Shown here: positions 2,992-61,661 of the stretch, piece by piece
How the letters are laid out: each line of letters begins with the position of its first letter
Numbering within the stretch: position 1 is the first letter of the stretch
Assembly (NCBI GenBank): GCA_965644295.1
Contig: CBFFRP010000253.1
Location: 1-64,000, forward strand
Origin: Paraphysomonas bandaiensis
Lineage: Eukaryota > Protista > Chrysophyceae
Length of the DNA: 64,000 nt
Direction: 5' to 3'
Notes under the pieces: generated by a model
Seen by the model: only the letters and a program-made list of their open reading frames with translations
The model's database searches: none
Told to the model about the DNA's origin: nothing
Made by a program: the position numbers and the translations under genes

Positions 2992-5026
<2,035 letters not shown>

Positions 5027-5178
5027 GGTTCATGTGGTTAAGGTATTGTGTTTTGGGGTATTGAGTGATGTATAGAATTTCACATCTCTATGCATAGATC
5101 TCTCCATATTATCATATAATTCCACTCTAGTTGATATTCTTCATCTACTTCAAGCCATCAGGTCGCTTCATATCGCTA

Positions 5179-8100: not shown

Positions 8101-11100
8101 ACGTATGTCATATGATTATACAGCCGCTCTTGACTTTGGTGCGATCCAAGCTCGTCGGACAGGAAGCCACCCTCTGCCTTGAAGTCCTCGTTATGAACCT
8201 CGTTGACAAATCTCTGGCTCACTGCAAGAGGTACTAGCACCTTGTGGATCAATATATATGTACCACAATATGATAACACTTGTGTGAAGGGATATCGTAA
8301 ATGCGTTGCGACTTGTGGCTCTCATACTGCAAGAGCCAGTAAGCAAGCAAATGCCGGAAGAACATATATATGCACGGGCAGTGGAGGTTGCCCCTGCCTT
8401 TTCGGGAGTAGTACGGGAGCTTCATGTTCTTGCGGCCCGCTCCATTACTCCTACTCCCGCCTGCTTTCATATGATTTTTCCACTGCTGAAAGGCGTCCTG
8501 TCTCTGCGTGCTCTTATACCCGGCTGTGAACAGGCCTTTATGGTTCTGGAAAGGTATGTGTATGACATAACACTATGGCGCACTCATTGATATGGGTGTA
8601 TAGGTTCTGGTCTGCTATGGACATGGACGCCTCAAGTTCAGCACGTCCCCTGCTGCGCCCCCTCTTGGAGACGTGCCTGACAGCGATGGCTAGGTACCGT
8701 GTGACCCCTGCACCCGAAAAAGTGCTCTTGCGAATGGTATCGGCGGTCCCTCTGAGCCCCATGGAGTGGTCTCCGATGCTTGGTGCTCATGGACTTCTTC
8801 ATCATGAAGTCCATGTGCGGCTTGCATGTCTGCGTGCTCTTCATCATGCTGTAGAATGTGGCATGTCTGAATCTATGAATCGGAACCCGCTCCTGGTTTC
8901 AAGAGTGTGGCTTGTGTGTTATGACTTAGAAGAAGAGGTGCGGACTCTTGCCGTTGAAGTGTGGCAAAAGAGCGGTATGGTGCAAAGGGAGGCCTTCATG
9001 ACCTCGCTTGTACCCTTGTTTTCGCATGAGGCAACACATGTGGCAATGTCAGCGGCCCGTGCTGTTGCGGGAGGCATGACTCTATACCCACATCTTTGCA
9101 GGGAGTGCGTGGAAACTCTGTGTACGATATTCACAGAAGCGATGCCTGTGAAAGAAGCACCCCCGCGCGCCATTGCCCCAACGGGATCTGGTGCTGTTGC
9201 ATCTCTGATGATGCGGGCACCTGTAAAGAAGACTGAGGATGTAACTTTCCCTTGTAGAGTGGCCGTGGCTGCTAGCTTTGAGGAGATTGGGAACACCATG
9301 GCACTCGTTAAGGCTCATGACACGGAGGAGTTGGTACAAGGTAACAGAAGATTGGTTGAGCTGTGTTTTTATTATTGATGTGTATTTGTAGATGTCATTA
9401 CGTTCGTATTGAGTGAAGGTGTGACGGATGAACACCCTTCTGTGCGTGAACGTATGCTTGCTGCTGGGCGTGCAGTAATCGATACGTATGGTGTGGATTA
9501 CTGTGATGGTATTATCGCGACGCTCGAACATACTTTGCGGCAGGAACAACAAGAAGGAGAGGAGGCCGCAAGGTTTGACCATCGGCATGAGGCAGCTGTC
9601 ATCTTGCTTGGAGCAGCGGGAAAGCATCTGAAGAGCGATGATCCTAGTATGATGGGTATTTTAGAATCACTGGTAGTTGCTCTCAACACTCCGGTTGGAA
9701 GTATTCAGCGGGCAGTGGCGGACTGCCTTGTACCACTAGTACAGGGGCTTAAGAGTGATGAACGAGTGAAAACTATGCTTGAAAGTATCATTAACCAAAC
9801 GCTCAATGCAGAGACGTATGGTGAGAGGAGGGGAGCAGCCTATGGACTGAGTGCATTTGTGAAGGGCATGGGTATTCCCAGTATAAAGAATCACGACATC
9901 GTGAATAGACTGAAAGATGCCTGTTCTTCGGGTTCAATCAACAATAGACAAGGTGCCCTTTTCGCATTTGAGTTGCTCTCAGAAAGACTGGGCATGCTCT
10001 TTGAACCCTATGTTATTACGATCGTTCCGATACTGCTTAAGTGTTTCAGTCACTCCTCTGATCACGTGAGAGAAGCCTCACAAATGGCGGCTAAAGTTAT
10101 AATGGCTAAACTCAGTGCACATGGTTTGTATTCATACTTGTTCGCGTACGTGATACTCATATTTCTGTCAGGTGTGAAACAGGTTTTGACACCGATACTC
10201 TCTTCTTTGCCAACAGAAACGGCCTGGAAATCTAAACAAGAGGCACTGCGATTACTTGGTACGATGGCCTTCTGTGCTCCTAGACAACTGTCCACGAGTC
10301 TACCGCAGATCATTCCACGGCTGGTGGAGGCTGGATCTGATCCCCACCCAAAGGTTAAAGATGCTGCAAAGAAAGCTCTCACCGACATTACGTCAGTTAT
10401 ACGCAACCCAGAAGTCTCGTCTTTGAGCGGTGTACTTATCGGGGCCCTCACGGACCCATCGAACAAGACGAAATCTGCACTGGAGGCTCTGTTGGAGTGC
10501 GAGTTTATGCATTCGATTGATGCCCCCTCGCTCGCGATCCTAGTGCCTATCTTAGCTCGAGCCTTACGTGACAGAGGTGGTGATCTTAAGAGGAAATCTG
10601 CTGTTATTATTGGAAATATGTGCAGCATGATCAATGACCCGAAGATCATAGTCCCATATTTGCCACAGGTATGTCAAACACTGTTGAAGTAAAACGAAAA
10701 TTACTCATGCAACTGTATTCAGGTGGTGCCAGGACTACAAAGTGTTCTTATGGACCCCATTCCTGATGTACGTGCGACTAGTGCGAAAGCACTTGGTAGT
10801 CTAATGGCAGGTGTCGGTGAACAAGAGCTGAGTGATCTGATCCCTTGGTTGATGTGTGCCCTGAAAGATGACACCTCACCTGTCGAACGAAGTGGAGCAG
10901 CTCAAGGTCTGGCTGAGGTGCGCTACCTTGTCTATTATAGTGTTCACACGCTTACCATTAGCAGATGTGTCTATCCTTGGAAGAAAATAGAGTAGATGAA
11001 ATCGTCCAGGATGCACTGAATCTACAGAGAAGTCCCAAGGCGTCTGCTCGCGAGGGCCTTCTCTGGCTACTCACTTTCCTTCCATCCGTGGTTGGCGAAA

Positions 11101-14100
11101 TATTTGCCGTCTACATTGGTCATACACTTCCAGTCGTTCTAGCGGGGTTGAGTGATGACTCGGAAGGGGTACGCGAGGTTGCGCTCAGGGCTGGACAGGT
11201 ACAAATAATCGAGAATTTCTTATGCGGTTTTCTGATACGTATATTTCTAATAGGTGTTCGTGCATGCTCACGGCAGAAACCACACCCATGACGTGGTAAA
11301 TCCTTTACTTTCCGGCATGTTTGATGACGACTGGCGTATCAGAGAGAGTTCCGTCACTCTCTTAGGTGAGTGAATAACAGTGTTTTGTTCACAAGATTTA
11401 CCATATTTGTTAATATAGGTGAACTCCTCTATCTGATTGGAGAGACTAAGGCGGTCGGACTCACGGACAATGAGAACGACGACGAGGATGGCAATGCTGG
11501 TGGCCTGGGGTCATCAAGTCGCGTCGTCACCACTATCCGCGCCCACGTTGGCGAGGAGTTGGCAGACACAATTTTAGCATCGCTATATATGGTGCGCTCT
11601 GATGGATCCGTTACAGTCCGGCAAGGGGCACTTCAAGTATGGAAATCCGTTGTCTCTAATACGCCGCGCACTCTCAGAGAGGTCATGCCGTCACTAGTAG
11701 AACTTCTCATTCGGAAGCTATCGTCACAGTCTGATGATCATAGAACAGTCGCAGGTCGGTGTCTTGGAGATCTCGTCAGAAAGCTGGGTGACCATGTGCT
11801 TCCATTGGTTGTCCCATATCTACAGAGAGGTCTTGGAAGCAGTGATGATGAGCTTCGACAGGGTGTGTGTCTGGGGCTTTCTGAGATATTGCGCGCAGCT
11901 ACTCAAAAGCAGGTGGAAACGTACGTTGACACTCTAGTACCTGCCTTGCAGCAAGCTCTATGCGACGACTCGGATCATGTGCGGACACTGGCCGCTCAGG
12001 CTTTCCACGCTCTTATGAAAGCAATTGGTGAGCGCGCTACCGCCAGCGTGGTTCCTTCGCTTCTTGCCCGTGTGAAAGACGAATACGACCCTATGCGACC
12101 AGAGGAGATTGGGTCTGCACTCAGAGGTTTGCGAAGTATTGTTATGCATAAACCGCGAGATCTGCTCGAGTATCTCTTGCCGGTACTACTCTCCCATCCT
12201 ATTCACCCCCATTCTGCGGGAGCTCTAGGCGTCATCTGCGAGAGTGCAGGGGCCGCTCTTCATCACCATTTTTCTTTCCTTATTCCACAACTAGTGGACG
12301 AGCTCGTCGTGATGGATGAGAAGATTGCAGAAGTCAGTGATGATGACGCCAAGGCCACGTTTGAAGTGTTGCGCCATTCTGTGGGGGCGATTGTTGGTGC
12401 CACCTCCACCCAAGGAGTCAACTACTTAGTAGGAGAACTCGGCAAACAAATTGAGCATGAAACAGACTTTCGGCGCAGGAAATGGGGTTGCATCATCACC
12501 GCTGACTTCTTTCGCCGCTGCAAATCGGACTATGCCGAGTATGTTCCTGTACTGCTTAAGTACTTGCTCAGCCGGAGTGCAGATGCCGAGAAAGGTGTGT
12601 TGGAAGGGGTGCTAGAAGCTCTCAGAGCCTTAGCTGCAGCCGTCAGTGTGGACGAACTCTCCTCTCATATGGACTTCGTGAGGTCCTGCATATCTCTCAC
12701 TGCGAGTGATGCTAAACATCGCTCTGGTCGGGCGAATCTTATTGCACAGGACGGGACCGTCCTATTACCACTTTTCCGACTTCCCAAAGCCCTGGACCCA
12801 CTCTTACCGATCTTTATACATTGCCTCATGAACGGGTCCCCTGACAGCAGGGAATGTGCTGCGGATGGTATTGGTGAGCTGATGACAATGACTGAGACAG
12901 CCCTTCTGAAGCCCTACCTCATTAAGACCACTGGTCCCCTCATCCGTGTTGTTGGAGACAGGTATCCGAGCAATGTGAAGTATGCCATCTTACAGGTGAG
13001 GGTGCTACTTTGATATAGATATGTTCACATCAATATTGTCATGTAGACGCTCTGTATTCTTCTTCAAAAGGGAGGTGTCGGTCTCAAGGCTTTCGTCCCA
13101 CAACTTCAGACTACTTTCGTAAAATCTCTCAGTGACCCCGCGAAGCAGGTCCGCAGCAAGGGTGCTCATGCTCTTGGGATGCTTGTTCCAATGAGTACCC
13201 GGGTTGATCCTCTGCTCAATGAACTCTCTTCAAGTAGTCATCAGGCGGAGAGCAATGCTATTCGCGCGTCTATGTTGCAGGCTCTTGCTCAGGTAATACA
13301 TGCAGGAGGTGGGAAGGCCTCCGAAGGCGCACTTGTCAAGGTCTCTCAGACCGTGTTGCAATGTTTAGTGGCGGATGAAGAGCAGGTGCGACAGAGCGCC
13401 TCGGAGTGTGTATCTTCACTTGCGGTGGTGTTGACGGAGGATGGCGTATGCGATTTATTACAGGATATTGTTGACCTCGACTCGTCTTCAGGAGCTGTGT
13501 GGGCTCCAGCTGCAGGCAAAGTACTGGGATGTGCAGCCGTTTTGCGCTCTGGTGGATCCCGTACATCGCGCGCCAGAGGCCAAGCCTTTGATCTAGTGGA
13601 TGCTTCTCTTGCGGACGATAGAGTAGCTGTTAGAGTGGCAGCGTGCAGGTAAATCTAATATACCTGGAATCGTGCGTAGTTACTTATGAACTTTTTAGCT
13701 CCTTAGCAATGGCAGTGGCACCTCCTTCCCTTACTACAGGTTGCCCGGAGGCCACAAGCGAGCATAAGGACCTTAGCGCAGCGCTTATCACATCTTTTAC
13801 CCCAAAAGTACTGGCCTGTGTTCGGGGAGAAGCTCTGGAGGTTCGTAGAGCTGCAGTGACCACGCTGAAGGAGTTCGCGAAGCACCACCCGTCAGTTCTG
13901 CTTCCATTTTCTGCTCAAATAGGCTCAGAGCTCTACCCTTTTCTTTCGACGAACGAGATAAACATTCGGGTAAGTACTAAACGAGTTAATGTTCAAGTGT
14001 CATTCTAATCTACAACACAGCTAAAGAGGCATGCCGAGCGCACTATGAAATACATCATGGGCATATCTTATCACTCAAATCTGGACAGCGAACTCTTTCA

Positions 14101-19476: not shown

Positions 19477-20759
19477 ATGGTTCTAGATAACACAGATACT
19501 TCCCTTGCCCAAGATGTATATACTGTACAAGATGGAGACACTCTTGTTGGCATCTCTATCAAGTGTAACGTGTCAGTGGCTCGTATCAAGCAATACAATC
19601 ATTTATACGGCAAAAATAAGATATATTTCGGACAGGTAACACACTGCTGTGTATTCCCTCTTATCTCTAGTTTCATATTATATATAAGGTGATTCGTCTC
19701 AAACCGTATACGGATATAACTGAGAGACCATTCAAGATGCTTGCCGATTGTCATAGAGGTTCTTCGTTTAAAGAGAAGGAGAGATTGCGTGCATCGACTG
19801 CATCAATGAAGAGTTATATAAATAAAATGCCACAACTGTCATCTGATTCTGTGGAAGCGTCATCCTGTGGGTCAGAGATATCTGTTACTGTCACTGAAGC
19901 CGCTCAACCATTGAAGAGTATCTCATCCTTTCGTTACAAAGCAATCAGCGATCCCAACCTGAGTGATAAGGCGAACTGTGGCAAGCTGAAAATAGAAGAT
20001 GAAATTCATATATTTCCGAGACGACGCATAACATACTGGGATAATGTATGCGAGTACTCGGATGACGAGACTGAATCGGTTTGTGACTACGATCAATTCA
20101 CAGATATGGAGTTCTCAAGCTCGCCCTCATCCTCCGTTGACTTGTTACAGCACCAACTGCACTTACCACCCTCAGTTCAGATACAAAATGCTAACAGCAG
20201 CATTCTTAGTAACCGTCAGGTGGGAGCTCTGGCTCGGCGACTTCCTGCCTCACTGCAGCTTGATTCTTGGGTTCCGCTCTACTCACTGCAACTGCACGGT
20301 GCTGACCTGAACTCTTTTTACCAGTGCGCAAAGGGTCACAAGTACACTCTCCTCGTGGTGCGAGCGGAGGACGGCAGTGCGTTTGGAGGATTTGGGTCTG
20401 AACCTTGGCGGCCACAACGACAGCATATGTTTTATGGAGGAGGGGAATGCTTTCTCTTCAGGACACTCAGCGACTCCAAAGCTGACGATGTGGAGGTGTT
20501 CGACTGGAAGTTTGAGAACTATTTTTTCATGTGGAGTAGTCATGAGCAGGTGGCGATGGGTGGCGGAGGGGGGCAATTTGGCTTTGTTCTTGATCCAGAC
20601 TTCCTATACGGCGAAACCAACCCATGTGACACCTTCGGGAACCCTCGCCTTACTCCGCACATACTACCATTCAAGATATCTGACGTTGAGCTTTGGGGGT
20701 TCGAGAGTTTTATAAACACAACCAGTGCCTGTGGTGGTGGATACCGAGAGGCACTATAA
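19477..20759 (+). CDS. LysM + TLDc domain protein (OXR1/NCOA7-like)
   Basis: Exon 1 (19477-19635) encodes LysM (YTVQDGDTLVGISIKCNVSVARIKQYNHL). Exon 2 (19689-20759) encodes TLDc (LYSLQLHGADLNSFY, FGGFGSEPW, YGGGECFLF, MGGGGGQFG, CDTFGNP, VELWGF). Confidence 0.9.
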
Positions 20760-43279: not shown

Positions 43280-45588
43280 ATGTTATCTGTATCAGCACGT
43301 ACAGTCTCTCGCTATATATACACCCCCTTCACAAAACCACATACTCCTTATTCTTTACTTAATAAACGTGGAATTTTTGATACAATTCGTTCAAAAATCA
43401 ATCCATCATCATCACTTTCATCCCCTGAACAACAAATTCAAAATGAAATTGAAAAATTAGCAAAACGTCATCCAATGAGGGCTGTTCAAGTCATAGAGAA
43501 GGGATGGAGTAGTAAAGAGCTACCAGTCAATGATCATTATCTTAGATTATATTTAAAATTAGCTGGATCATTACAATTATTTGATAAAATGGATATTGCA
43601 GCATTTTCAAAAAATATTGAAAGTAATGTGATAAGAGGGACTGCAGGGGAATCATCTACTGCTGCATTGAGTATGGCAGGTGGAACATCCCCTACACAGC
43701 CATTGTATGTGCGAACAGTTAATAACAATAGTTTTTGGGATTCTTTAAAGTCTATGGCGATATCAGGGATAAAGTTTTTCGTGGTTGTGTCGTTTTTGAT
43801 GGTTCTCTTTGATGACAAAAGTAATGGAGGAGGAATTTCCAAATTAACTGGGATGAACTCTATCGTTCACGTCGCAGAGAAGAGTGACAAGTCCTTCGAT
43901 GATGTAGTTGGAGTGGATGAGGCCAAGGAAGACCTACAGGAGATCGTCATGTACTTAAAGGAGCCAAAGAAATTCACCAAGTTGGGGGGCAAACTCCCCA
44001 AGGGTGTGTTGCTCACTGGTCCCCCCGGAACAGGGAAAACCCTCTTGGCCAAGGCGATAGCCGGGGAAGCCGGAGTACCTTTCTTTTATACTTCAGGGTC
44101 TGAGTTTGAGGAAATGTTCGTCGGGGTTGGTGCTAGACGTGTTAGAGACCTTTTCCAACAGGCGAACAGTCAGTCCCCTTGTATTATATTCATCGATGAG
44201 ATTGACGCCATAGGCGGTAGTCGGCACCTTAAGGATCAGTCTGCCATGAAGATGACTCTCAACCAGCTGCTGGTAGAAATGGACGGGTTCCAGCAAAATA
44301 GTGGGACGATTGTTATTGCTGCCACCAACTTTCCGGAATCCCTCGACTCTGCCTTGACCCGGCCTGGACGCCTTGACAAACACGTAGACGTATCTCTACC
44401 TGATGTTGGCGGACGTAAGGCTATCCTCGAGCTGTATGGATCTAAGGTGCCACTTTCTAAAGATGTGGATCTCGAACAGATTGCGAGGGGCACACCAGGG
44501 TTCAGCGGAGCAGAGTTGTACAACTTAGTCAATCAAGCAGCACTGAAAGCTTCTCGAGATGGCCTTTCTGCTATTGGTATGGCCTCTCTGGAGTACGCCA
44601 AGGACAAGATCATGATGGGGGCAGAACGGCAGTCTGCAGTTATAAGCAAGGAGACGATGAAGACAACTGCATTCCATGAAGCAGGCCACGCTTTAGTTTC
44701 CTTGCTGACAGACGGTGCGGATCCTATACACAAGGCTACCATCATGCCTCGTGGACGAGCTCTGGGAATGGTAATGCAACTTCCTGATGGTGACCAGACC
44801 TCTCTATCCAGGAAGCAGATGTTGGCTAAGTTGGACATATGCATGGGCGGCCGGGTAGCTGAAGAGCTGATATTCGGAGAAGATAATGTTACATCTGGTG
44901 CTTCTAGCGACTTCCAACAGGCCACTAGGTGAGCACACGTGAATGTATATGTGACCATGAGAATTATTACTAAATGCCTTTTGTATATGTTCTGTGAGGG
45001 TCTTTTAGCGTGTGATATTGTAACGGTGGTGTTTGTAGACTTGCTAAAATGATGATTACCAAATGGGGATTCAGCTCGAAATTGGGTATACAGTATATGG
45101 ATGACAAAGACAAGTTCTCAGGAGATACTCAAACGATAGTAGATCAGGAAGTGCGAAAGCTTCTCGAGGAGAGCTATAATCGCGCAAAAACGTTGCTGGA
45201 GACACACCGCAAGGAGCTAGGATTGATTGCAAATGCATTGCTTGAACACGAGACTCTATCGGGTAGTGAGGTGGTAGACATTTCCAAGGGAAAACCGCTC
45301 AATTTGCGTCTGCGGTCTCAGAAAGCTTCTCGTGAGGCTACCCCCATCCCACCTTCCAAGCGCCCGAAGGCAGAGAAAGATAAACCAAAGAGTAGTCCTG
45401 TTACCGTGCAGAATTCCATTGCTCCTCCTTCGTCATCCTCCTCCTCCTCCAGCAGTACCAATCAACAGCAACAGGCTCCGTCCAGCACTTCACAAGATTC
45501 CCCCAGCTCCACCAGCAGCAGTACTAGTGCGTCTGCAAATCAGCAGTCAGGAAGTAATCCTATCAGAGGCCCGCCCGTCGGCAAATAA
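43280..45588 (+). CDS. ftsH: ATP-dependent zinc metalloprotease, YME1/FtsH4-like (mitochondrial i-AAA type)
   Basis: Presequence-like N-terminus, single TM, Walker A GPPGTGKT, Walker [31 protein letters not shown] and zinc motif HEAGH. One intron at about 44929-45039. Confidence 0.93.
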
Positions 45589-45908: not shown

Positions 45909-48322
45909 CAGGGATAGGGAACAATATATTGTATTGCAATATATTGTACAATATATTGCAATATATTGTAAAATATATTGATTGGTGGACTGGTCAAATA
46001 TTCCATCAATAGTGTTTCTGTTAATAGAGCTCACAATACTATTGCAATATATTGCAATCAATATTATGATAGTCATATAAGAGAAGATCCTCAACTGTAT
46101 GGTGCAAAATATACGCCTCTGTATACAAATATCCGGAAAATAAGAAAAAAAGCCTATTTTTGATGTTATTTTCTATTTTTTATGTATCGCCAGCTCAAAC
46201 AGCACTCTACACCTCTCCACATGTATGTACAGTACTTCTCTTAATATAGTATATATATCCTATAGTGACAAGAAGAGACAACTGAATGATGAGTGCATAC
46301 AAGAGTAGGGACATTTACCGCTGTTTTTGGAGTCCGGTCGAAGGTGTCCCGAACAAACACGAGTGTAAAATCTGCGGACGTAAACGACAACAGAATATTC
46401 GGAATGGATACAACAATCTAAAGGATCACACTTTCTCTCATGATGTGTGGGAGGAGACATTGAAGAGGTATTTACGGGCTGTCTGCACCAATGGTCCCAT
46501 GGATGCTTTTGTTCTGCAGCCTTCAGACAAGGCGAAAACAATTTATGAGTGGGTGGAGTGGATTGTCGAGGAAAATCTTCCATTAAATTTCTGTGAGAAG
46601 AAATTAACTAGAAATAAGACTTCTTTGGGTAAGATAACTACAAAAACACTGAAAAAATATATGAGACTGTTGGAACTGAAGCTACGTGATATGATTAAAG
46701 ATATATTACCACCAACATTTGGTCTAGTCATGGACGGTTGGACGTCGGACTCCCACCACTACAGTGCAATATTTGCAACCTTTTGCGACCGAACCAATAC
46801 TCCGAATTTGTTATTGTTGTCTTGTAATGTGCAAGAGGATATTGATGACAACACTGTTTTCGATGAAGATCTACCTGATGAAGAGAAATTCTACGGATTC
46901 ACTGCTGCGGATTGGTTTGATACTATCGTAGAAGTTCTCAATAAATTTGGAGTTGAGGTTAACGCTGACAATGTTTGCGACATTGTTGAGTTTTATCTTG
47001 GAGATAACTGTGCTACAAACAGAAAATTGGCTACTGATTCTGGTAACACCGTATTACTTGTGTGAAATTGTCGAATGTTATAATATATATTAGGTGTACC
47101 CCTAGTTGGATGTGCATCTCACCGACTAAATCTCGCTGTCAATGAACTCATTGGCAGCAAAGAGAAGAGGAATAACCAAGGAGATGTGACAAGATCTGAC
47201 GAAGGCATTAGGCCTCTTATTCGCAAAGTAGACCTACTAATGGGGAAGTTGAAGCAGATTAAGAATGCTGCATTGCTACGTGGCCAAACCAGTCTGCTAC
47301 CAGAAAGGGTAAATGTCACAAGATGGTCTTCTATGTTTCAGGTTCTCGTAAAGTGGATGCGTATAAAAGATCATGTATTAAAAATTGAAGACTTACCGCT
47401 TGCAGTTACTGATATGATTCCTACTCCTCGACAGAATACCGAAATAATCGCCCTTGTAGACGACCTGAGGAAGTTTGAAAGCGTCTCGAAATTGCTTCAA
47501 ACTGGAGGATCAAGTCAAGTGAATCTTTATGAATGCCGGAACATATTTGATGGCTTATTGAGGGACTTTAGGCCAAAGTATCCACTATCTGCTTTTTACA
47601 GAAAAACAGTCCCATTGTTAATGATCCGAATTTCGAGAATGGAATTGCAAAACTCCAAGCAGGCGAAGAATTGGACTTGACAAGATCTGAGAAAGATCCT
47701 GTTAGAATATATCTCCGTTCAGACAGTGATTATTGCAACAATACAGAGGATGATGAAGCTGAAGTTGGCTATGCGGAAAAAATTCTTCAATCAGCTCAAA
47801 AACTTAAGAAGCGAAAAGTTGAAATATCTAAGTACAGGTGCACGAGTCATGTAGTATGTACTTCCAATACGTGTGAACGCCTGTTCAGCGCAGCAAAACT
47901 GATTATATCAGTGTTGCGCAAACGTATGCATCCTACTACACTTAATATGCTGTTGTTTCTGAAAGCTAACCGACAGTTGTGGCCGGATGCAAGCATATTT
48001 CAATCAATATTGAATGAATATGGTGATGATGATGTCACCGATGATGGCTCAGAGGATGAGTATGAGGAAACTTTTAATTAGTTAAGAGTAGTGGGTTTGA
48101 TTATCAAGTGACCTTAGACCTTATAAAATATGGCAAGTACTAAAAATGAAAACTACGGATGTGTTTACTTACTGATTAGTCATACTAATATATTGCAATA
48201 TATTGTACAATATATTGCAATATATTGCAATAGTATTGTAGGACCGGTTTAAAAAATCCATCAATACTATTGATGGAACGCTACCTAACAATAGTATTGC
48301 AATATATTGTTCCCTATCCCTG
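45909..48322 (+). mobile_element. Full-length hAT DNA transposon (2414 bp)
   Basis: Perfect 23-bp TIRs CAGGGATAGGGAACAATATATTG / CAATATATTGTTCCCTATCCCTG. Perfect 8-bp TSD TTTTTTCG (45901-45908 and 48323-48330). Subterminal CAATATATTG repeats at both ends. Confidence 0.96.
46286..48081 (+). pseudogene. hAT transposase, near-intact (one intron at about 47043-47093, one apparent frameshift near 47590)
   Basis: BED finger (CKICG...NLKDHTFSH), catalytic D (VMDGWT), second D (LGDNCATN), CxxH (GCASHRLNL), TRWSS and catalytic E (TSNTCERLFSAAK), then dimerisation region MLLFLKANRQLW. Confidence 0.88.
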
Positions 48323-49743
48323 TTTTTTCGTATGGAACATGAGTGTAGAGCTTTGAAATTGTAGTCAAAATGAGTACAATTTTTTTATTTCGAGTGGGAC
48401 CAAATACAGTCCGACAAGTGGAGGGCTGGTCCACTTTGTCAAAAAACGTCTCCTTGGCATAGCTAATGCTGTATTTTGTATAATATTGCGTTGTGTTCAA
48501 GTCTTTCAGCCACCACATATCTATCATCCCATACCTAGCATTAAGTGGAAAACGAAGTGTCGTACAGAATAAACTGGCATCCGGAAATGAACCCACCTCA
48601 AGGGTATCCGGGGTATTGAGCTGCCAACTGAAGTCAAGCATCCGGGATGTTCACCTTCAGGACAGTGAGCGAAAGGGGTTGCTCCTTGGTGTTTGCGGTT
48701 TCGTAGCGCCAATTAGTAGGATATTATCAGAGTTAAGCACTAGTTAGTTAAATTGTTTTGATACATTAGTTCTGACTCTGACATTATCATGCCTATTATT
48801 CTAATAATAATCAGACACTCACGACCTGACCGTATAAGATTGTGATATATCTAACAAGATTGTATGGAAATGATTGGTAGTTGAGACAAAACATAACTAT
48901 GGAAATTGACAGTGAATGACAAGTAATATTGATCTTAATTTTAATATGTTTATAATTTATAATCTCAGCACATAGAGTGAAACTCTTGTTCAGTAATGAC
49001 AATTTTCTTACAGACCTTACTTGAATACAGTAGTTGTGCACAGTACTACATGAGCTAATCATAATGATGACATGAATAATGTTAGTGAAACTGAAATACT
49101 TTGACTGTCTAAGATCAAAGGGACATTGATCAAAATTTAATGAATACGTAAAAATTCAGTTGTTTATTTACACCATCAATCAAATGTCAGCTTCGGATAT
49201 GGTAGCAGATGTTAAGTCAGACTACTGGAAACAACTTCCGAAGTACGATCAGTTTGGGGTGATCAACTACTGGACGAAGAAATTCAAGGTATGGCTCATG
49301 CACAAGAACTGAAACCTTTTAAGACTCTAGAAACGACCAATGAGATCCGCCGATAACTCACCTATCTACTGGATCTCAAGAAATGGTTAGAGGAATGACA
49401 CTTGTAGGCAGTTGTTTAGAGGAATGGTTGGAGGAATTTTCGAGGCAGTCCAACCTGTGGCTTTAGCACTGAAGATCGTTGATAAATACTTCAGGGAGAA
49501 GAATATGTTGCGATACGATGACCATGAGAAGGAATTGCAGCCAGCAAATAAATAGAAAGGACGTCGGAACAAAAACGAAGCTACAGACCACCCTCGAAAC
49601 GCTGGAGAACTTGGCGCAGTTATATACTAATTTATATCTGAACGGTGAACTTACGCATACATATGTGAACCTCTCGGTACTAAACATATCTTGAAAGATC
49701 AAACTACATATTCAGTTTCTCAATATCATCACAGAATTTGTAC

Positions 49744-49811
49744 GAGGGCCTGGTAACCGTTAATGGTAATGGCATATTGCATTAATTGCCATTAATGGTT
49801 ACCAGGTCCTG
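49744..49811. mobile_element. 68-bp hairpin hAT-type mini-element, same family as 40969-41026
   Basis: GAGGGCCTGGTAACCGTTAATGG...CCATTAATGGTTACCAGGTCCTG flanked by the perfect 8-bp TSD ATTTGTAC (49736-49743 and 49812-49819). Confidence 0.85.
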
Positions 49812-50371
49812 ATTTGTACATCACCATATTTCACTGTATTCTCGTACATTGTCTTCAAGTGACATACTGAATATTCTAGAATATAATCCATATCCTTATA
49901 ATAATATGTACTCTATATAGCAAGTCCAGTTTTTAGTCAGTCTATAGATGAAAAGCTAGTTTCTGTACACAACCGTTCTCATGTAATAATCAAACTTTCT
50001 TAAGAATATGTATTATCATTTAGATTAACGATATTTTGATAGCGAAGTATATAATATTGTCGTTGAGAGTAGCATGATGTCTTCTTGTTATGATTTTTGA
50101 CGGGTTTATTTTTTGTTGGTGCCGATTTGTTAATAGTAGCGATGAGAATTCATGCTATACTCTACACTCTACACAACAAGTAGCCATAAGACCAATGAAA
50201 ATATATCGGTATACATGCATAACTATTTTCTTGTTATATTTAGAAGCCATCAACAATTGAAATCTTAGATTACCCTTCTGTTGTGGTTGGTTTTACATGG
50301 AGCCCTGTGCGCTTCTATCTGTAGGTCGTTATTAGATTGTGCCCTTTCGTGTAACACATAACGCCCAACAA

Positions 50372-52280
50372 TTACAAATTTGTGACCATTGTGTAAAGTA
50401 AAGCTACTCCATACCCTGTGGCCCTCTCACCGATATGTGAAGGGTAGGCCATGTCAATGTGCATCCAGCTACCCCCTTTGGCAAGGAAGGAGTCCAAGTG
50501 GTTCCCAATGAACTGGCCAGCACAGGATGTTTGTGCGTTAGTACGACATGCAACACTGTTCTTCATGTCAGCCACCGCTGATGCAAACTCCACTGTAAAG
50601 AACTCAGGGCAATAGGGTATTGGGTGCACCAGGTCCCCGGAAAAGCGGCCCATGCGTACTGCGAGAGTTTCGAGAGACTCGTCGTTTGTGTACACCGCTG
50701 CATGCCTCTTCCCCGTGGCGATACCCTGTGCACCCGTGAGAGTGGCCATGTCGACTATGTGGGAAGGGTTGAGGTGTTTGGAAGCAAACGCCACGCCATC
50801 GGAGAGCACCAATCGCCCCTCTGCGTCGGTATTGTTGATCTCTACAGTCTTACCAGAGTACATGACGTGAATGTCGTCAGGTCGAGTGGCCTCAGGCCCA
50901 ACGCTGTTCTCGGCAAGGCAGAGAAGTGCATGAAGTGGCCGTTTAAGCGACCCTCCATCTAGTACTAGAGACTGAAAAGCACCCAGCACACCCGCAGACC
51001 CACCCATGTCGCGCTTCATACCTGGCATGCCCTCTTTCGTCTTGATTGAGAGACCACCGGTGTCGTACACAATACCCTTGCCGACCATACAAACCGAAGG
51101 AACGGCAGGGTCGCAAGTAGGGGGAGTGTAGGATAAAACAACAAGTGCAGAAGGATGCACAGCTGCTTGTCCAACTCCGAACAAACCATTCATCCCTCGC
51201 TCCCGCAGTTCATCTCCACGTATTACAGTAAGGTTGACAGCATGGCCAACCTCAGTAAGACTAGCTGCCACGCTCTGGGCCACTTCGGTGAAGTGATCGG
51301 TATGCAAGATATTAGGAGGCATATCTGCGATTCATACTATTAAAACTGTAACAACGAGATATCTTACTCACCTACTAGTTTCTGGCATAACTGGATACTG
51401 CTGGCAAGATTATTAAAAGTACCACAGCTATAAGAGCCAGCGAAATTAAGGTAAACCCGAACAACACTCTCCCTTGGACCATTCTGCTTCAGAGCGTACG
51501 TGGGAAAAGCCCGCGCCACAGCACTATTTATCATTGTTTCAATAAAACGAGAGGGAGGGATACATAGAAAGTGAGCTTACCAAGCTGTGGACAAAGAGGT
51601 CGAAGCAGGATCTTCATTCAGGAGAACCACAGTTAACTCCCCGCTGCCTTTATTCGCCTTCACCAAGTCGGTAACAGCATGTGGGCGACCAGGAGCATTG
51701 TGTCTGGAGCATCCTGTGCATCGCATGAGGGTATATGATATACATATATATATACATATACTATCTGTGCATCTATATATACACATACTATCTATACATA
51801 TAGACATACACATAGTATCTATACAGCTATATATCCAAATAATATCTATACGTATATATATACATATACATACTATATGTACAAATACTATAAACACATA
51901 TACATACACTATCTATACAGCTATATCTACACATCCATATACACATCTACATATACACATACCCAGCCATATACCCCTATATCTGTATGTATGTGTGCAG
52001 GTATCTTACCTGTGGGTATGGCACACACCGCCACCCTCTGCATCTTATCTCCAACAGAAAAAAATGTTTCAGCAGATGCTCCATGTTCAGCTGATGGTGT
52101 TAGAGTAGAAGAGATGGTTGATAGAGTCTTCAGTTGATTGTTAATAGGGAATATGCCGCTCTCCACACACATGCTATTCATATGAATAGAACTCAGAAGA
52201 GATCCACTCCCAATAACAACTACATTGAGAGGAACCTCTGAGAGATGAGTAGAAGAGAGATCGTGATAAGTAACTGGCAT
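50372..52280 (-). CDS. NPEPL1: M17 leucine aminopeptidase, NPEPL1-like, 4 exons
   Basis: CSRHNAP, AVARAFP, LV|DMPPN, VGKGIVYDTGGLSIK, MKRDMGG, NNTDAEGRLVLSDG and DMATLTGAQ. Metal ligands intact. Confidence 0.9.
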
Positions 52281-52353: not shown

Positions 52354-52613
52354 CCATACACACACACCCCATACACACACATACACACACACACATACAT
52401 ACATACATACATACATACATACATACACCCCATACACACACACACATACATACATACATACATACATACATACATACATACATACATACATACATACATA
52501 CATACATACATACATACATACATACATACATACATACATACATACATACATACATACATACATACATACATACATACATACACCCCATACACACACACAC
52601 ATACATACATACA

Positions 52614-52647
<34 letters not shown>

Positions 52648-52793
52648 CATACATACATACATACATACATACATACATACATACATACATACATACATAC
52701 ATACATACATACATACATACATACATACATACATACATACATACATACATACATACACACATACATACATACATACATACATACATACATACA

Positions 52794-52822
<29 letters not shown>
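52354..52822. repeat. (CATA)n / (CA)n microsatellite between divergent genes
   Basis: Read directly. Confidence 0.97.
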
Positions 52823-52825
<3 letters not shown>

Positions 52826-52892: not shown

Positions 52893-54348
52893 ATGGAAAT
52901 AAAAGTCGGTGAAGTGGTTATCGACGTAGAGGATATCATTCATATCGCAGAGAAGGCCTCAGAGGGTGTGATGGGTGTGTATCGGGGTCTATCAGAGGTG
53001 TATGTATGTGTGTATGGATGTACACGTAGATCACATGTATGTGTGTGTTATAGCAATGGAATGATATGTTCCTAGAGGAGGATACGCCGCTTATACAGGC
53101 ACAGGAGGTGTCTCATAGGATATTGACTTCTGGTATACGCTCCACCCCATACTGTCATACGTGTGTATGTGTGTATATATATGTGTATATATGTGGATAT
53201 GTGCAGTGCTTATGTATGTATATATGTGTATAAGGCCATGTATATGATAAGCATGTATGTATGTGTATGTACGATGTGTTTGTCTGCTGTGTGGTGTGTT
53301 GTTTTTTCTTGCTCTTGCAACACACTGTTTTGAAGGCTGTATACTTACACTATATACGCATGCAGAACTTTCCAGCCGATTTCCTGATATTCCTGTTATT
53401 TCCAAGAATAGCAAAATGGAAGGTTACGCTGATCGAGTTTCATACCAGCATTTCTTCTGTGTGAATCCACTGGATGGATACAAGGTAATTGGTGCAGACA
53501 CTGGTGTGAATTGCTAATACTGTAATATATAGGAGTTCGTGCGGCGTAGTGGACAGTTTAGTATCAACATTGGCCTGTGTGAGGGTCAGACACCGGTGCT
53601 GGGTGTTGTATATGTGCCTTGTGGGCACTCAGGTAACTCAGCTCCCGCTGTGTACTATGCCGTGGATGGATTGGGTGCCTATACTCGAGAGGTATCTCTT
53701 TGTCATGCGGAGGGTGGTGCTGATAATAAGCCCCGTCTTCTAATTCCGAAGCGACTGGAGGCACAATCTTTTTACGAACACGATTCTGGCCTGCGCATCA
53801 TTACACCTTCAACTTCTTATTTCACAGATGCTACACATGCCTTCGTGTCGGCATTTACTGACCCTGTCCTGCTCGGGGATGGGGGCAACTCCCTTCTGAA
53901 TATGCTGCGTGTGGCATCAGGGGATGCAGATGTGTATCCAAAACTGGCTCCAACATGCGAGTGGAATACATGTGCGCTTCATGCTATTGTGAATGAAGCC
54001 GGGGGAGAGATTTTGCAAATCGGTGGGGGAGCAGATGCTGTTCCCGGGATGCAGTTAGAGTACAATAAACCTCACCCACTCAACCCCTATCTTGTCACTT
54101 ATGGAAAGAGACTTGTGCGTATGCCGCCATCATTGCCCGGAATTGCGGGACAAGAGAATGTAAGCGAGAGTGAGAGTGAGAGTGACGAGGGTAGTAGTTC
54201 TGATAGCGAAGTACTGGAAGAAGTCAAGAATGATAATGGCGAGAAAATAGTGTCACACTATTTCATAGGCTTGCTAGTGGTGACAATAGTTTCTTTAGCT
54301 GTATTATATTTTGTCCTGATAGAAGGAAATTTGCCAATACTTAGATGA
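52893..54348 (+). CDS. CysQ / 3'(2'),5'-bisphosphate nucleotidase-like protein (inositol monophosphatase superfamily) with degenerate metal ligands and a C-terminal TM helix
   Basis: LSSRFPDIPVISKN, FFCVNPLDGYK|EFVRRSGQFSINIGL, PVLGVVYVP, VASGDADVYPKLAPTCEWNTCALHAIVNEAGG and LEYNKPHPLNPY. TM YFIGLLVVTIVSLAVLYFVLI. 5' exons approximate. Confidence 0.82.
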
Positions 54349-55079
54349 GTTTTTGTTGGACCTCATTTAGTGACAGTGCCTTTGGTGTATTTACACCAGG
54401 AAAAAGTCTTCCTCTTGAATTAGTGAAGACGTCGCATTCATTATATATTTGGCTGCTTTATACTATTATGTAAATAGTCGTTTTAAATGTAACCTTGGTG
54501 TCATTTTCTAAATTCTGACATCTGTTAGCTATGTATATGGTAATTCACTCTACATCACATAAGTATTTCAAAGTGATTTTAAAAATAAGCATGTAATACC
54601 TATTCGACACTAGCAGTGTACTTTGTAGTGTTCCACACTGCCGCTACTGGATGACGAAGAAGTTAGCAACGATGGAGAGAGACGGTCCTGAACGTAGAAC
54701 TCTATAGCGTGAGGCTTAAGCCAGAGCAAACAGCCACATACCAAAATGCAAATAATCAACGACCTGAACGTGCGTAGTACCACAGCCATATTCTGAAAAG
54801 TGAAAAGGTCTCTGTACACTGTACATATACATAAATATGAAGCCGTATACGGGGTACGATGACAATATTATTTTAAAACCGAATGATGTGTATTATTGAA
54901 ATAAAATAATAACCGACAAAATCAAGTTTTCAGACATAAGTACTTGCACATTTATTACAAAAAGATACGATAAATATAATATCAATACAACATTACTACG
55001 ATGTGTAAGTATCTATATTTTCTTTATCAGCTGAATACGAATATGATACAGTGCTCACGAAATATAATATACACAGTTA

Positions 55080-58000
55080 TCAGCCTATACTAAACAGATT
55101 TCTAAGTGTGTTACTCACAACGTTGTTAACATCAGCCCTAGATACCATTCTAGTCAATCGCATGAGATCTATCCTTTTGACCACAACACCATGTCTTTCA
55201 TACAAGTACTGGTCCCTTGCTTCACAAAATCGTCTCTTTCGTGGGTGTCTGTGGGTGGGACCATCGATTTCAATGTTGACGATTGCACCCGACTCCATTT
55301 GCAATACACAATCTGCTTCAAAACCATGTAATAGTCGATTTCTCATACAATGTGCGCCCGGAAGGCGGGCCGTTACTTGAGCGTCAATTGCATCTAGGAA
55401 CTGTGTTTCCACGGAAGTGCTACACATAGGAGCTGGAGTAGTTTCATCAGCGAGATGCACATGTCCGTGTAGGTATCTCTCCAGTTTATTCAATCTCTTG
55501 TCAACATCACTTGGAAGTCCAGCGACCTGGTGTCTGAAGAGAACTACGGTCCGCCAGAGGTTCACGGTCCACCCTCCTGATTCAACTACTCTTTCAGCTT
55601 GTGTCAACACCTCATCGAGAATATCTTTGACTTCCCTGTTAGCGGGATCCATCCCTTGCAGCCCATAGAGACAGAGGCCCGCACCCAAAGGAGAGAGTGA
55701 ACATTGTTGCATTCGAACAGTGAGCGCTGTAAGAACCTTTCGCACCTCCACATGCTCACTGGACATACTCTGCAGACCGTACAGACAATTGCTTACATTT
55801 TGGTCACTGAAAGTCTCTGGACATGTTTCTATCCTTTTAGATATTTCCTCAAGCAAATTTCGCACTTCAATTTGTTTACATGACATGTTTTGAAGTCCGT
55901 ATAATGCCATCGTCAACCCCTGTGGTCGCAATGTCTCTGAGGATGCAGACAAACTGGTTGCCAACGTCGCAAGAAGTCCACGTACATCGGCATGAGCGCT
56001 GGACATTCCCTGGAGACCATAAAGTGCGTTTGCCACTGCAAGAGCACCCATCGGCTCTGCGATACGGTCCACAATAGCTAACCGTAAAACAGAAACTAGA
56101 TTTAGAACTTCTACATGATCACTTGACATACTCTGCAGACCGTAAATAGCGTACCCTGTGTTTTTCCCACTTGGAGGTTCAGAGCACTCCGCTATTTTTA
56201 CGCTTAAGGCAGACAGCAAACTACGGCACTCAGGCCATTCCGCTGACATACCCTGAAGCCCAAACAAGGCACGACACACTTGAAGGCCGGTGAATACTTC
56301 CTCACATATATCAACTTTTGTCGTAAGAATTGATAGCAGAGCTCGAACACTGGAGTGATCACATGTCATATTTTGCAGACTATTGAGACAGTCGCAGATA
56401 AGTTTCCCACGGAATTGATAATCACTGCGACTCAAGAGCCCCACCACGGAGCGCAAAAGTGAACACACTTCAGGATGACGAGTTGACATCCGCTGTAGTC
56501 CGTATAATGTTCGTGCGGCATCACTTGATGTCAGAGTCCCCTCACATTTCATTGTTTGTTGAGCTAGCACAGCCAACAACCCTCTCACTTCAGGTTCATC
56601 ACTACTCATATTCTGTAGTCCGTACAACATAGTGCCCACCATCTGACCACTGAATGGCTCTGTACACTCCGATACTTTCGCAGTCAACGCTAATAATATC
56701 TTCCTTACCTCTTCATGCTCACTTGACATGTTCTTCAGTCCATAGAGAGCGCTGCTTACATTCTGTGCCTCAAGAGTATCCTTACAGTCAACAACATTAT
56801 CTGCTATCACCTTGAGTAGTTCTCTGACCTCTGTATACTCGCTGGACATATTTTGAAGACCATAAAGAGCACTGCTGATTGCCAACGCAGTCGCTTGATA
56901 ATTACTCTGTCGAATCCTTGTTGTTAACACCGACAATACATTCCTCACCTCTGGGTGTTCGCTGGACATAAGTTGCATACCATAGAGAGCATTCGCCACT
57001 GCCTGAGAGTTTATAGGTTCGTCACACCCCGAAATTTTCTTTGCCAATACCACCAAAATGCCCCTGACCTCATCGTGGTCGCTGCTCATATTTTGTAGGC
57101 CGTAGAGTGCGTTACCCACTGATTGAGAACAGAACACTTCCTCACAGGTCTCGATGCGACTCTTTAATGCGGAGAGAACGGCGCGCACCTCAGGGTGAGA
57201 ACTACACATCATCCGCATGCCGTACAGTGCGTTGCCAACTGCTTGCGCACTCAAGCTACATTGTACCTCATCCAACCGGCTAGAAAGAACATGTAGCAGT
57301 TCTCTTACCTCTGGATGATTCGCAGACATCCTCTGCATACCATAGAGAATGATTCCAACAGCCTGTTCTGTCAGCACGTCATCGCACCACTTTAACTTTA
57401 AAGCGAGAGCACTAACTAGTCTTCGCACCTCCTCGTGCTCACTAGACATTCTCTGTAGGCCATAAAGAGCATTACTGATGGCTTGGCCTCCACATATATC
57501 ACGACTGTCTTCAATTTTTCTACAAAGGGCCCGCAACAAACATCTCACCTCCTCGTGGTCACTTGACATCCCTTTCAAACCATATAAGGCATTACCCATA
57601 GTCTGCTCATCTAGCTCATTGCACTCCCCCACACGTTTGCTTAACACAACCAACAACTCCTTGACCTCAGCATGGTCACTGGACATATTCTGCAGTCCAT
57701 ATAAAGCGATACCAATGGTCCGAACTGTGAATCGTTCTGGGCATGATGCCACTTTTTCAGACAGCACCGTCAGTAATTCTCTCACCTCCACATACTCACT
57801 GGACATTCTCTGCAGTCCGTAGAGAGTATTGGCTACACCTTGCGCCGTCAAAGTCTCTTTACCAGCCGACATCTTTATCGTTAGAGCACGAAGCATCCTT
57901 CGTACCTCAATGTGATCGCTACTCATGCGCTGCATTCCATATAGAGAATTGCTTATTTCTTGGCCATAGAGAGTCCCTTTACTATTAATAACCTTATCAT

Positions 58001-58658
58001 GAAGAGCAAATAAGAGTTGTCTGACTTCAGCATGTTCACTCGACATTCTCTGTAGACCATATAAAGAGTTCCCCACTGCTCTTGAGTCGAATATATCCAC
58101 ACAACGTGTTACCTTATTAGCCAATATAACAATTAATTGTCGTACTTCTTCATAATCACTTTTCATTGAATTTAATGAAAATATCATACTTGCAATATTT
58201 CTAGATGTTAAAATATCCGTATAATTGATTAATAATAGTGATAATACGGATATATAGGATCGTACTTGTGGACTATCGCTTGACATGATCCGTAATCCAA
58301 TAAAACACATTTCAATTTGATATTTTTTTAATTTGATTGTATTTGATAGTATTGATGTGATCATATGAATATGTGAACTAGATAATGAGATTCGTAAAGT
58401 TCCACATGATTGCATGATTTGTGGGATAAGTGAGACATGATTCCGTTGAATGATGAGATCAATTAATTCATGAATGTATTTTGGATGATGATGATAATGA
58501 TGAAATAAATATTTTAATGTTTTATTATTTAATTGATTGAATTTGTTTGGATTGTATTTATGTTTAATGGATTTAGTTGTATAGTAGATGGATTGATAGT
58601 GTTGATATGATGGGAGACGTAAGAGTCTATAGGAGGGTTTATATATAAGATTATGCAT
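55080..58658 (-). CDS. Intronless helical-repeat protein (about 23 x 40-aa OPR-like repeats) with a C-terminal RAP domain; putative organelle-targeted RNA-binding or processing factor
   Basis: Repeat consensus of about QxVGNALYGLQxMSSEHxEVRxLLxxLxxKIxxCxExL. C-terminal LHGFEADCVL...NIEIDGPTH...ARDQYLYERHGVVVKRI. Acid-free, basic and hydroxylated N-terminus. Confidence 0.88.
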   Translation of the reverse strand: MHNLIYKPSYRLLRLPSYQHYQSIYYTTKSIKHKYNPNKFNQLNNKTLKYLFHHYHHHPKYIHELIDLIIQRNHVSLIPQIMQSCGTLRISLSSSHIHMITSILSNTIKLKKYQIEMCFIGLRIMSSDSPQVRSYISVLSLLLINYTDILTSRNIASMIFSLNSMKSDYEEVRQLIVILANKVTRCVDIFDSRAVGNSLYGLQRMSSEHAEVRQLLFALHDKVINSKGTLYGQEISNSLYGMQRMSSDHIEVRRMLRALTIKMSAGKETLTAQGVANTLYGLQRMSSEYVEVRELLTVLSEKVASCPERFTVRTIGIALYGLQNMSSDHAEVKELLVVLSKRVGECNELDEQTMGNALYGLKGMSSDHEEVRCLLRALCRKIEDSRDICGGQAISNALYGLQRMSSEHEEVRRLVSALALKLKWCDDVLTEQAVGIILYGMQRMSANHPEVRELLHVLSSRLDEVQCSLSAQAVGNALYGMRMMCSSHPEVRAVLSALKSRIETCEEVFCSQSVGNALYGLQNMSSDHDEVRGILVVLAKKISGCDEPINSQAVANALYGMQLMSSEHPEVRNVLSVLTTRIRQSNYQATALAISSALYGLQNMSSEYTEVRELLKVIADNVVDCKDTLEAQNVSSALYGLKNMSSEHEEVRKILLALTAKVSECTEPFSGQMVGTMLYGLQNMSSDEPEVRGLLAVLAQQTMKCEGTLTSSDAARTLYGLQRMSTRHPEVCSLLRSVVGLLSRSDYQFRGKLICDCLNSLQNMTCDHSSVRALLSILTTKVDICEEVFTGLQVCRALFGLQGMSAEWPECRSLLSALSVKIAECSEPPSGKNTGYAIYGLQSMSSDHVEVLNLVSVLRLAIVDRIAEPMGALAVANALYGLQGMSSAHADVRGLLATLATSLSASSETLRPQGLTMALYGLQNMSCKQIEVRNLLEEISKRIETCPETFSDQNVSNCLYGLQSMSSEHVEVRKVLTALTVRMQQCSLSPLGAGLCLYGLQGMDPANREVKDILDEVLTQAERVVESGGWTVNLWRTVVLFRHQVAGLPSDVDKRLNKLERYLHGHVHLADETTPAPMCSTSVETQFLDAIDAQVTARLPGAHCMRNRLLHGFEADCVLQMESGAIVNIEIDGPTHRHPRKRRFCEARDQYLYERHGVVVKRIDLMRLTRMVSRADVNNVVSNTLRNLFSIG

Positions 58659-61193: not shown

Positions 61194-61661
61194 ACATACA
61201 TACATACATACATACATACATACATACATACATACATACATACATACATACATACATACATACATACATACATACATACATACATACATACATACATACA
61301 TACATACATACATACATACATACATACATACATACATACATACATACATACATACATACATACATACATACATACATACATACATACATACATACATACA
61401 TACATACATACATACATACATACATACATACATACATACATACATACATACATACATACATACATACATACATACATACATACATACATACATACATACA
61501 TACATACATACATACATACATACATACATACATACATACATACATACATACATACATACATACATACATACATACATACATACATACATACATACATACA
61601 TACATACATACATACATACATACATACATACATACATACATACATACATACATACATACAT
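61194..61661. repeat. Pure (CATA)n microsatellite between divergent genes
   Basis: Read directly; about 117 units. Confidence 0.98.

Follow-up and report, generated by a model that had tools for sequence, protein, structure and literature searches.

What does a eukaryotic protein bind when it joins 23 evenly spaced helical repeats to a nuclease fold, and does it cut what it binds? The question is raised by a gene of the marine chrysophyte Paraphysomonas bandaiensis, located at positions 55080–58658 (minus strand) of the first 64,000 nucleotides of contig CBFFRP010000253.1 (assembly GCA_965644295.1). This whole stretch was analysed and is called the window below. Judged by sequence and predicted structure, the encoded protein of 1192 residues (the query) represents a distinct 40-amino-acid (40-aa) branch of the OPR/RAP superfamily, which is missed by Pfam and fails the strict definitions of OPR, HPR and Pfam RAP proteins. 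On balance, the query is probably a nucleus-encoded RNA-processing factor of the OPR/HPR-RAP superfamily which is imported into mitochondria and belongs to a branch expanded in chrysophytes.

The gene is expressed and unspliced. It had been read from the sequence as a single-exon open reading frame (ORF), and unbroken RNA contigs from two RNA runs (54988–58481 and 55130–58463) agree with this. Both runs represent RNA, because the GT-AG intron of a neighbouring gene is spliced in each of them and the intergenic DNA is empty, although start sites cannot be shown by such contigs. All four allele differences within the ORF, including two that affect the first 60 codons, are synonymous. The gene and its parts are as follows.

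55080–58658 (minus strand): intron-free gene for the 1192-aa repeat protein, from the ORF, unspliced RNA contigs and allele differences
58554–58658 (minus strand): residues 1–35, probable mitochondrial presequence; basic, unstructured in the model and upstream of the RNA contig end at 58481
58332–58553 (minus strand): residues 36–109, N-terminal capping helices in the AlphaFold model (pLDDT >80 from residue 41)
55578–58331 (minus strand): residues 110–1027, array of 23 repeats of OPR type, with helix A at positions 3–11 and helix B at 21–36 of each unit and candidate specificity sites at 5 and 2
55431–55577 (minus strand): residues 1028–1076, helical linker from the array to the nuclease fold in the predicted model
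55083–55430 (minus strand): residues 1077–1192, Vsr/DUF559-type (RAP-like) nuclease fold, from fold matches and residues E1084, D1116, E1130, D1132, H1136 and D1149
54988–55079 (minus strand): 3' untranslated region, from RNA contig coverage

The first 30 residues are basic and contain no acidic residue, and residues 1–35 are unstructured in the full-length AlphaFold model. This is a property of the family: in 20 of 21 scorable N-termini, the first 30 residues include three or more basic ones and no more than one acidic, as compared with 8% of control windows. Composition and disorder fit a mitochondrial presequence, as had been supposed, and the protein is very likely mitochondrial.

The repeats were anchored on their LYGL core. 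The first one starts at residue 110 and the array extends to about residue 1027, with the last unit running into the helical linker. The sequence-only reading, which had counted about 23 repeats of mostly 40 aa, was accurate: 19 units have exactly 40 aa, one each has 39, 41 and 38 aa, and the last is truncated. Since shuffled paralogs yielded no repeat matches, the array is not a product of chance. Repeat positions are numbered L1 S2 A3 Q4 x5 V6 G7 N8 A9 L10 Y11 G12 L13 Q14 x15 M16; the five-residue strings which had been listed for repeats 3–23 correspond to positions 4–8, and all 21 were reproduced exactly. The array had also been called homogenised, which does not hold. Repeats are on average 39% identical in protein and 48% in DNA (maximum 62% in DNA), and this low DNA identity rules out recent homogenisation. 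No recent block exchange was seen in the query array either. Judged by its sequence, the array is an old one with units of regular length.

Variation had been described as concentrated in the five residues preceding the core. This is correct for position 5 (2.9 bits), but helix B varies more. Entropies are 1.7–2.9 bits at positions 4–8 (1.7–2.3 at positions 4, 6, 7 and 8) and 3.0–3.6 bits at positions 25, 28, 32, 35, 36 and 38, so that the most variable columns belong to helix B and the linker, together with positions 2 (3.0 bits) and 5. At positions 4, 7 and 8 one residue prevails: Q, G and N occur there in 61%, 56% and 65% of 1,461 homolog repeats, respectively.

To which family does such an array belong? 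In the full-length model (pLDDT 91), 23 pairs of helix A and helix B form tandem two-helix units of an alpha-solenoid, as is typical of the OPR/HPR-RAP superfamily with its repeats of 37–40 aa. A model of the last 404 residues (789–1192; pLDDT 95) consists of helix pairs, the helical linker and an alpha/beta domain. Its top fold match is Polytomella ASA2 (Z 15.3), which is listed as an OPR protein (PMC5541062). Further matches are helical-repeat (RAP) proteins of the Toxoplasma, Chlamydomonas and Polytomella mitoribosomes (Z 11.5–14.4), trypanosome RESC subunits and FASTKD4 (Z 11.4). In the search with the full-length model, trypanosome RESC subunits ranked first and generic solenoids made up most of the matches. 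Helical repeats easily reach middling Z scores, and we thus place weight on the agreement with sequence. A profile search identified mL104, a RAP protein of the mitoribosome, at E 1.5e-4 and in an alignment that covers the LYG core, followed by RESC8, RESC4 and Toxoplasma RAP proteins, and the atlas neighbours are RAP, FAST, RESC6 and DUF1601 clusters. The OPR motif of Paulinella (PMC7729196) is in register at positions 1, 4, 10, 12 and 16, with 10 full matches as compared with 0.02 in shuffles; its helix-A core F-x-x-Q-x5-L-x-A-x-x-L is present, with each position matched in 12–23 of the 23 repeats. In our reading, the helix-B Pro and Leu of that motif correspond to positions 21 and 26 with one residue added per loop, and one extra residue in each loop would account for a period of 40 instead of 38 aa.

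An OPR-related 40-aa repeat had been predicted and is supported by this register. That it forms an unusual new class has to be abandoned, because the repeat is in OPR register, matches the mL104 profile and has its nearest fold neighbours among OPR/HPR-RAP proteins, an architecture already published. The narrower definitions do not fit. The strict Chlamydomonas OPR definition (38-aa period with PPPEW or LWALAR) fails, the query having a period of 40 and neither motif; the 37-aa period of HPR was found in one of about 1,390 homolog spacings; and the PPR definition fails with a period of 40 instead of 35 and no PPR profile match in Pfam. Pfam searches with the whole protein gave spurious helical matches alone (YejG, hemerythrin), and a single-sequence search of solved structures gave nothing significant. 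In the literature covered, which did not include subscription papers, a chrysophyte family with 40-aa repeats is not described.

These relationships also bear on what the solenoid holds. An armadillo-like, protein-binding solenoid, in which Asn8 would hold an extended peptide and the variable residues would read its side chains, would share with the query the 40-aa period, the conserved Asn and the net acidic array. Designed armadillo proteins appear at E about 0.01–0.03, and in one bacterial relative the repeats are joined to an OTU deubiquitinase. However, armadillo repeats have three helices and those of the query two, the sequence and fold neighbours are RNA-binding OPR/HPR-RAP proteins, and the fusion to a nuclease fold as well as the probable organelle targeting speak against a peptide ligand. 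We regard protein binding as highly improbable, and RNA binding as strongly suggested by sequence and model.

The C-terminal domain follows the helical repeats and has a Vsr-like alpha/beta fold in the model, as expected for a RAP domain. Alone, it matches I-Bth0305I (Z 9.5, root mean square deviation (rmsd) 3.1), Vsr (Z 9.3, rmsd 3.0) and NGO0050, in a range of Z 8.6–9.5. The EAD and IEIDGPTH motifs noticed earlier are located at residues 1114–1116 and 1129–1136, and the RAP-like nuclease fold proposed with them is substantiated by these matches and by the intact putative catalytic residues. D1116, E1130, D/E1132, G1133, H1136, R1148 and D1149 are kept in 58–62 of 62 aligned sequences (H1136 in 58), and E1084 is E or D in 55. 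Equivalence to D51 and H69 of Vsr was derived from the fold and the order of the residues rather than read off a residue alignment. For RAP domains at large, conservation is reported to be roughly 50% (PMC8190603), and it is far above this level in the sequences aligned here. Nuclease activity is plausible, with precedent in NCC1/NCC2 and FASTKD5; for the query copy itself, the residues leave activity and inactivity evenly balanced.

If it is active, is the substrate RNA or DNA? DUF559 is matched by 20 of 30 end domains and MTES_1575 also scores, rather than Pfam RAP. Vsr and I-Bth0305I cut DNA, and a single hypervariable residue per repeat is reminiscent of TALEs. Together this could indicate a TALEN-like enzyme directed to mitochondrial DNA, nicking it in repair, recombination or defence. 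Yet the characterised proteins of OPR/HPR-RAP architecture all act on RNA, RAP domains have themselves been modelled on Vsr and I-Bth0305I, and no TALE structure is among the fold matches. We see very little chance for a DNA target.

A more serious alternative is a non-catalytic RNA scaffold that would bind, protect or chaperone a mitochondrial RNA or the mitoribosome, with the nuclease fold being only RNA-binding or structural, as in FASTKD4 and the mitoribosomal RAP proteins, and recognition perhaps partly shape-based, without a simple code. In its favour, the structures matched best belong to subunits of ribosomes or of ATP synthase, FASTKD4 has the fold without activity (PMC11879112), and the end-domain profile matches only 13 places in the genome as compared with about 30 related loci, the other paralogs having a degraded domain or none. 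Against it, the His which is replaced by Asn in FASTKD4 is kept in the query and nearly all relatives, the acidic residues are kept in all, and none of 211 relatives is an ortholog of the 23-repeat array, as would hardly be expected of a fixed subunit of the ribosome. We consider a scaffold role unlikely, though clearly less so than binding to protein or DNA.

The roughly 30 loci are distributed over a genome of 62.6 Mb in 669 contigs. ORF extraction covered 20 of them and gave 21 long uninterrupted ORFs with 10–28 repeats each, in which 227 of 293 spacings are exactly 40 aa. In a quick and mostly unresolved tree of the C-terminal parts, the query groups with four other P. bandaiensis genes (SH-aLRT only 80). 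Exchange of repeat blocks between paralogs can be recognised from the sequence of two head-to-head genes on contig C90 (L031:1198-5502 and L031:6002-8524), with 28 and 13 repeats. They have 1.6 kb in common at 97.9% identity, including the nuclease domain, and show internal block duplications; one 520-base block occurs twice in the longer gene.

Named homologs come from chrysophytes and synurophytes (Ochromonas danica, Chromulina nebulosa, Epipyxis, Spumella vulgaris, Mallomonas annulata, Ochromonadaceae CCMP2298). Group A (P0001, P0004, P0010, P0030, P0045 and others) is a conserved set of chrysophyte orthologs, in which 15 repeats stand between long ends of low complexity; an organelle presequence is absent and the end domain is degenerate, so that this is possibly a cytosolic or nuclear OPR-type protein. 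Group B (P0095, P0014, P0090, P0112 and others; clade support 100), likewise a conserved ortholog group, has 10 repeats, an intact end domain and signal-peptide-like N-termini, which we read as plastid targeting; it is a candidate plastid RNA-processing factor. A third set comprises fast-evolving mitochondrial-type proteins. No ortholog-level match to group A or B was found in the P. bandaiensis genome. Neither psbA nor plastid rpoB was found in the assembly, as would fit a heterotrophic chrysophyte without plastid genome, while a mitochondrial contig (C669) is present. On this contig, cox1 lies in a 641-codon open frame (49607–50944, minus strand) that extends beyond the 434 matched positions.

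Searches with the repeat-family profile recover 1,028 (E 1e-30) or 5,436 (E 1e-3) clusters. Bacterial members of the 40-aa branch have units of 38–40 aa and other C-terminal parts. Two bacterial proteins, P0002 (L051:10001-15616; 22 units of 39 aa) and P0124 (L052:443-5431; 17 units of 38 aa), have units that are 72–81% identical within the array, a hypervariable position 5 and long C-terminal regions without Pfam match; they are good natural templates for a designer scaffold. The deubiquitinase fusion (P0121, L053:6001-10263) is from a metagenome-assembled genome of Pseudomonadota, has 13 repeats of 40 aa and the OTU domain at its C-terminus (E 3e-12), and its sequence suggests that a host-associated bacterium uses it as an effector. 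Another member, P0166, comes from Solimicrobium and has units of 38 aa.

Which residues might read bases? A specificity site is expected to differ between repeats and to be fixed between species. Group A (29 sequences, 60% identical) has 2.5–2.7 bits between repeats at positions 2 and 5 and 0.73–0.77 bits within orthologs, as compared with 2.2–2.6 bits within orthologs at helix-B positions 25, 28, 32, 35 and 36. Group B (12 sequences) agrees on positions 2 and 5 and adds 3, 4 and 8. Across these two independent groups, within-ortholog entropy ranges over 0.65–0.77 bits at positions 2 and 5 and 1.6–2.6 bits at the variable sites of helix B. Mean entropy in 14 homogeneous arrays (internal identity of 50% or more) peaks at position 5 (1.63 bits), with 36, 38 and 2 close behind; in 125 divergent arrays position 5 ranks twelfth. 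It takes rank one or two in the pair of bacterial arrays with the greatest regularity, where its residues are mostly A, E, N, G, H, Q and T, and it changed most often (44%) in 39 repeat pairs that are at least 70% identical.

The idea that variable helix-A residues constitute a code is supported in part: N-terminal residues of helix A behave like specificity sites, mainly positions 5 and 2 (with 3, 4 and 8 in one ortholog group), not all five residues evenly. The evidence from orthologs and homogeneous arrays narrows the candidate to position 5 with 2–4 and 8. According to a figure legend in PMC13126933, the proposed OPR code comprises one primary position and three contributing ones just upstream, which would fit position 5 with 2–4 if the registers agree. 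We slightly favour a modular code centred on position 5.

For the mitochondrial RNA-processing factor, the following mechanism is conceivable. After import, the repeats would stack into a solenoid on one single-stranded mitochondrial RNA site, each repeat reading roughly one base. Selection would depend mainly on position 5, where helix A begins and where the residues are mostly A, E, N, G and H, with positions 2–4 and 8 assisting. The C-terminal Vsr-type domain would cut or trim beside the bound site, thereby defining transcript ends in polycistronic RNA and maturing the transcripts, while paralogs in which the domain is missing or has lost its residues would instead be stabilisers. Repeat blocks that are duplicated and exchanged would be the source of new specificities.

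Several observations weigh against this reading. The RNA contigs end 180–195 bases short of the first ATG, in a region of AT-rich sequence adjoining an allele difference. PPPEW and LWA/LWALAR motifs are absent from the query, and Pfam RAP (PF08373) matched none of 62 end domains at E 0.01 (one of 30 at E 0.13); a Pfam RAP search of the whole genome gave no match either but is uninformative, as the controls were also unmatched. The closest solved homologs, the ribosome and ATP synthase subunits, are non-catalytic. The array is acidic, with a net charge of −15, and Q4 and N8 are both missing in repeats 16–19, so that the length read may be below 23. Conservation of positions 2 and 5 among orthologs could be structural, since position 2 caps helix A, or reflect helix-A packing. 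In young duplicates of P. bandaiensis, 8 of 11 amino-acid changes and 7 of 14 silent changes fall at positions 1–10, and the excess is not significant (Fisher p 0.41). Diversifying selection at these positions was rejected: silent changes cluster likewise, and patchy recombination explains the pattern equally well.

Among known systems, the OPR-RAP proteins of Chlamydomonas (NCL cluster, NCC1/NCC2), the Paulinella family and Arabidopsis RAP are targeted to organelles, as is probable for the query, and share with it two-helix tandem repeats with the F-x-x-Q...L-x-A-x-x-L core in register, a C-terminal Vsr-like domain and lineage-specific expansion. NCC1/NCC2 are retargeted by single substitutions and destabilise new RNA targets (PMC8635915). 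Unlike these proteins, the query has a strict 40-aa period, an LYGLQ core instead of LWA/LNA, no PPPEW and a far less degenerate scaffold; its family reaches 28 repeats as compared with 7–13, and Pfam RAP is unmatched. The human HPR-FAST-RAP proteins FASTKD5 and FASTKD4 are mitochondrial and likewise combine helical repeats with a Vsr-like RAP fold, but have few, degenerate 37-aa repeats. FASTKD5 cleaves pre-mRNA in vitro (PMC12242768), although its essential Asp429 is not established as a Vsr-type site, whereas FASTKD4, with Asn where Vsr has His69, was judged inactive (PMC11879112). Bacterial DUF1601 proteins and SKWP effectors (RipS, XopAD) have regular two-helix repeats of 37–42 aa and variable C-terminal enzymes; they differ in being secreted effectors or of unknown function and in having no organelle presequence, and the SKWP core motif is different. 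PPR proteins (including PPR-SMR and PPR-DYW) resemble the query in concept, with one repeat per base and an effector domain, but have a 35-aa period and another motif, and P. bandaiensis has separate true PPR genes. The Vsr, I-Bth0305I and DUF559 endonucleases share the fold (rmsd about 3 Å over about 95–103 residues) and the E-x-D-G-x-x-H and R-D motifs, but are bacterial DNA nucleases without a repeat array.

The neighbouring genes in the window are ordinary and have no evident functional link to the repeat gene. They encode a GCN1-like HEAT protein (5807–13652), a TLDc protein (19689–20759), an FtsH/M41 AAA protease (43280–45588), an M17 aminopeptidase (50372–51322) and a member of the inositol monophosphatase family (53539–54348). 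Two ORFs at 46286–47680 (plus strand) resemble pieces of a hAT-type transposase by eye, with no Pfam match at E 0.001. Long pure arrays of the tetranucleotides CATA and ACGC (2992–5027, 52370–52823 and 61194–61661) give rise to spurious long ORFs.

Decoding of OPR and HPR recognition has been hampered largely by the short and degenerate nature of the known repeats. In the 40-aa branch, long regular arrays are available together with conserved ortholog groups and more than 1,000 clusters (E <1e-30), and it also contains near-consensus natural arrays with one varying position. In P. bandaiensis, the sole organelle genome is apparently a mitochondrial contig in the same assembly. Regular arrays, ortholog groups and a single small organelle genome make the code testable, both computationally with about 30 arrays and with designer proteins. 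If the end domain cuts, the result would be a compact, all-protein programmable RNase. It is a tentative thought, which we hold rather unlikely as a whole, that the proteins of this branch act in nature as programmable RNA endonucleases whose code is nearly confined to one residue (position 5, modulated by 2–4 and 8), that they are common to chrysophyte organelles and bacteria and retargeted by repeat-block swaps, and that their scaffold is regular enough for designer arrays to be built on it directly. For the chrysophytes themselves, the 40-aa branch points to unannotated factors of mitochondrial gene expression.

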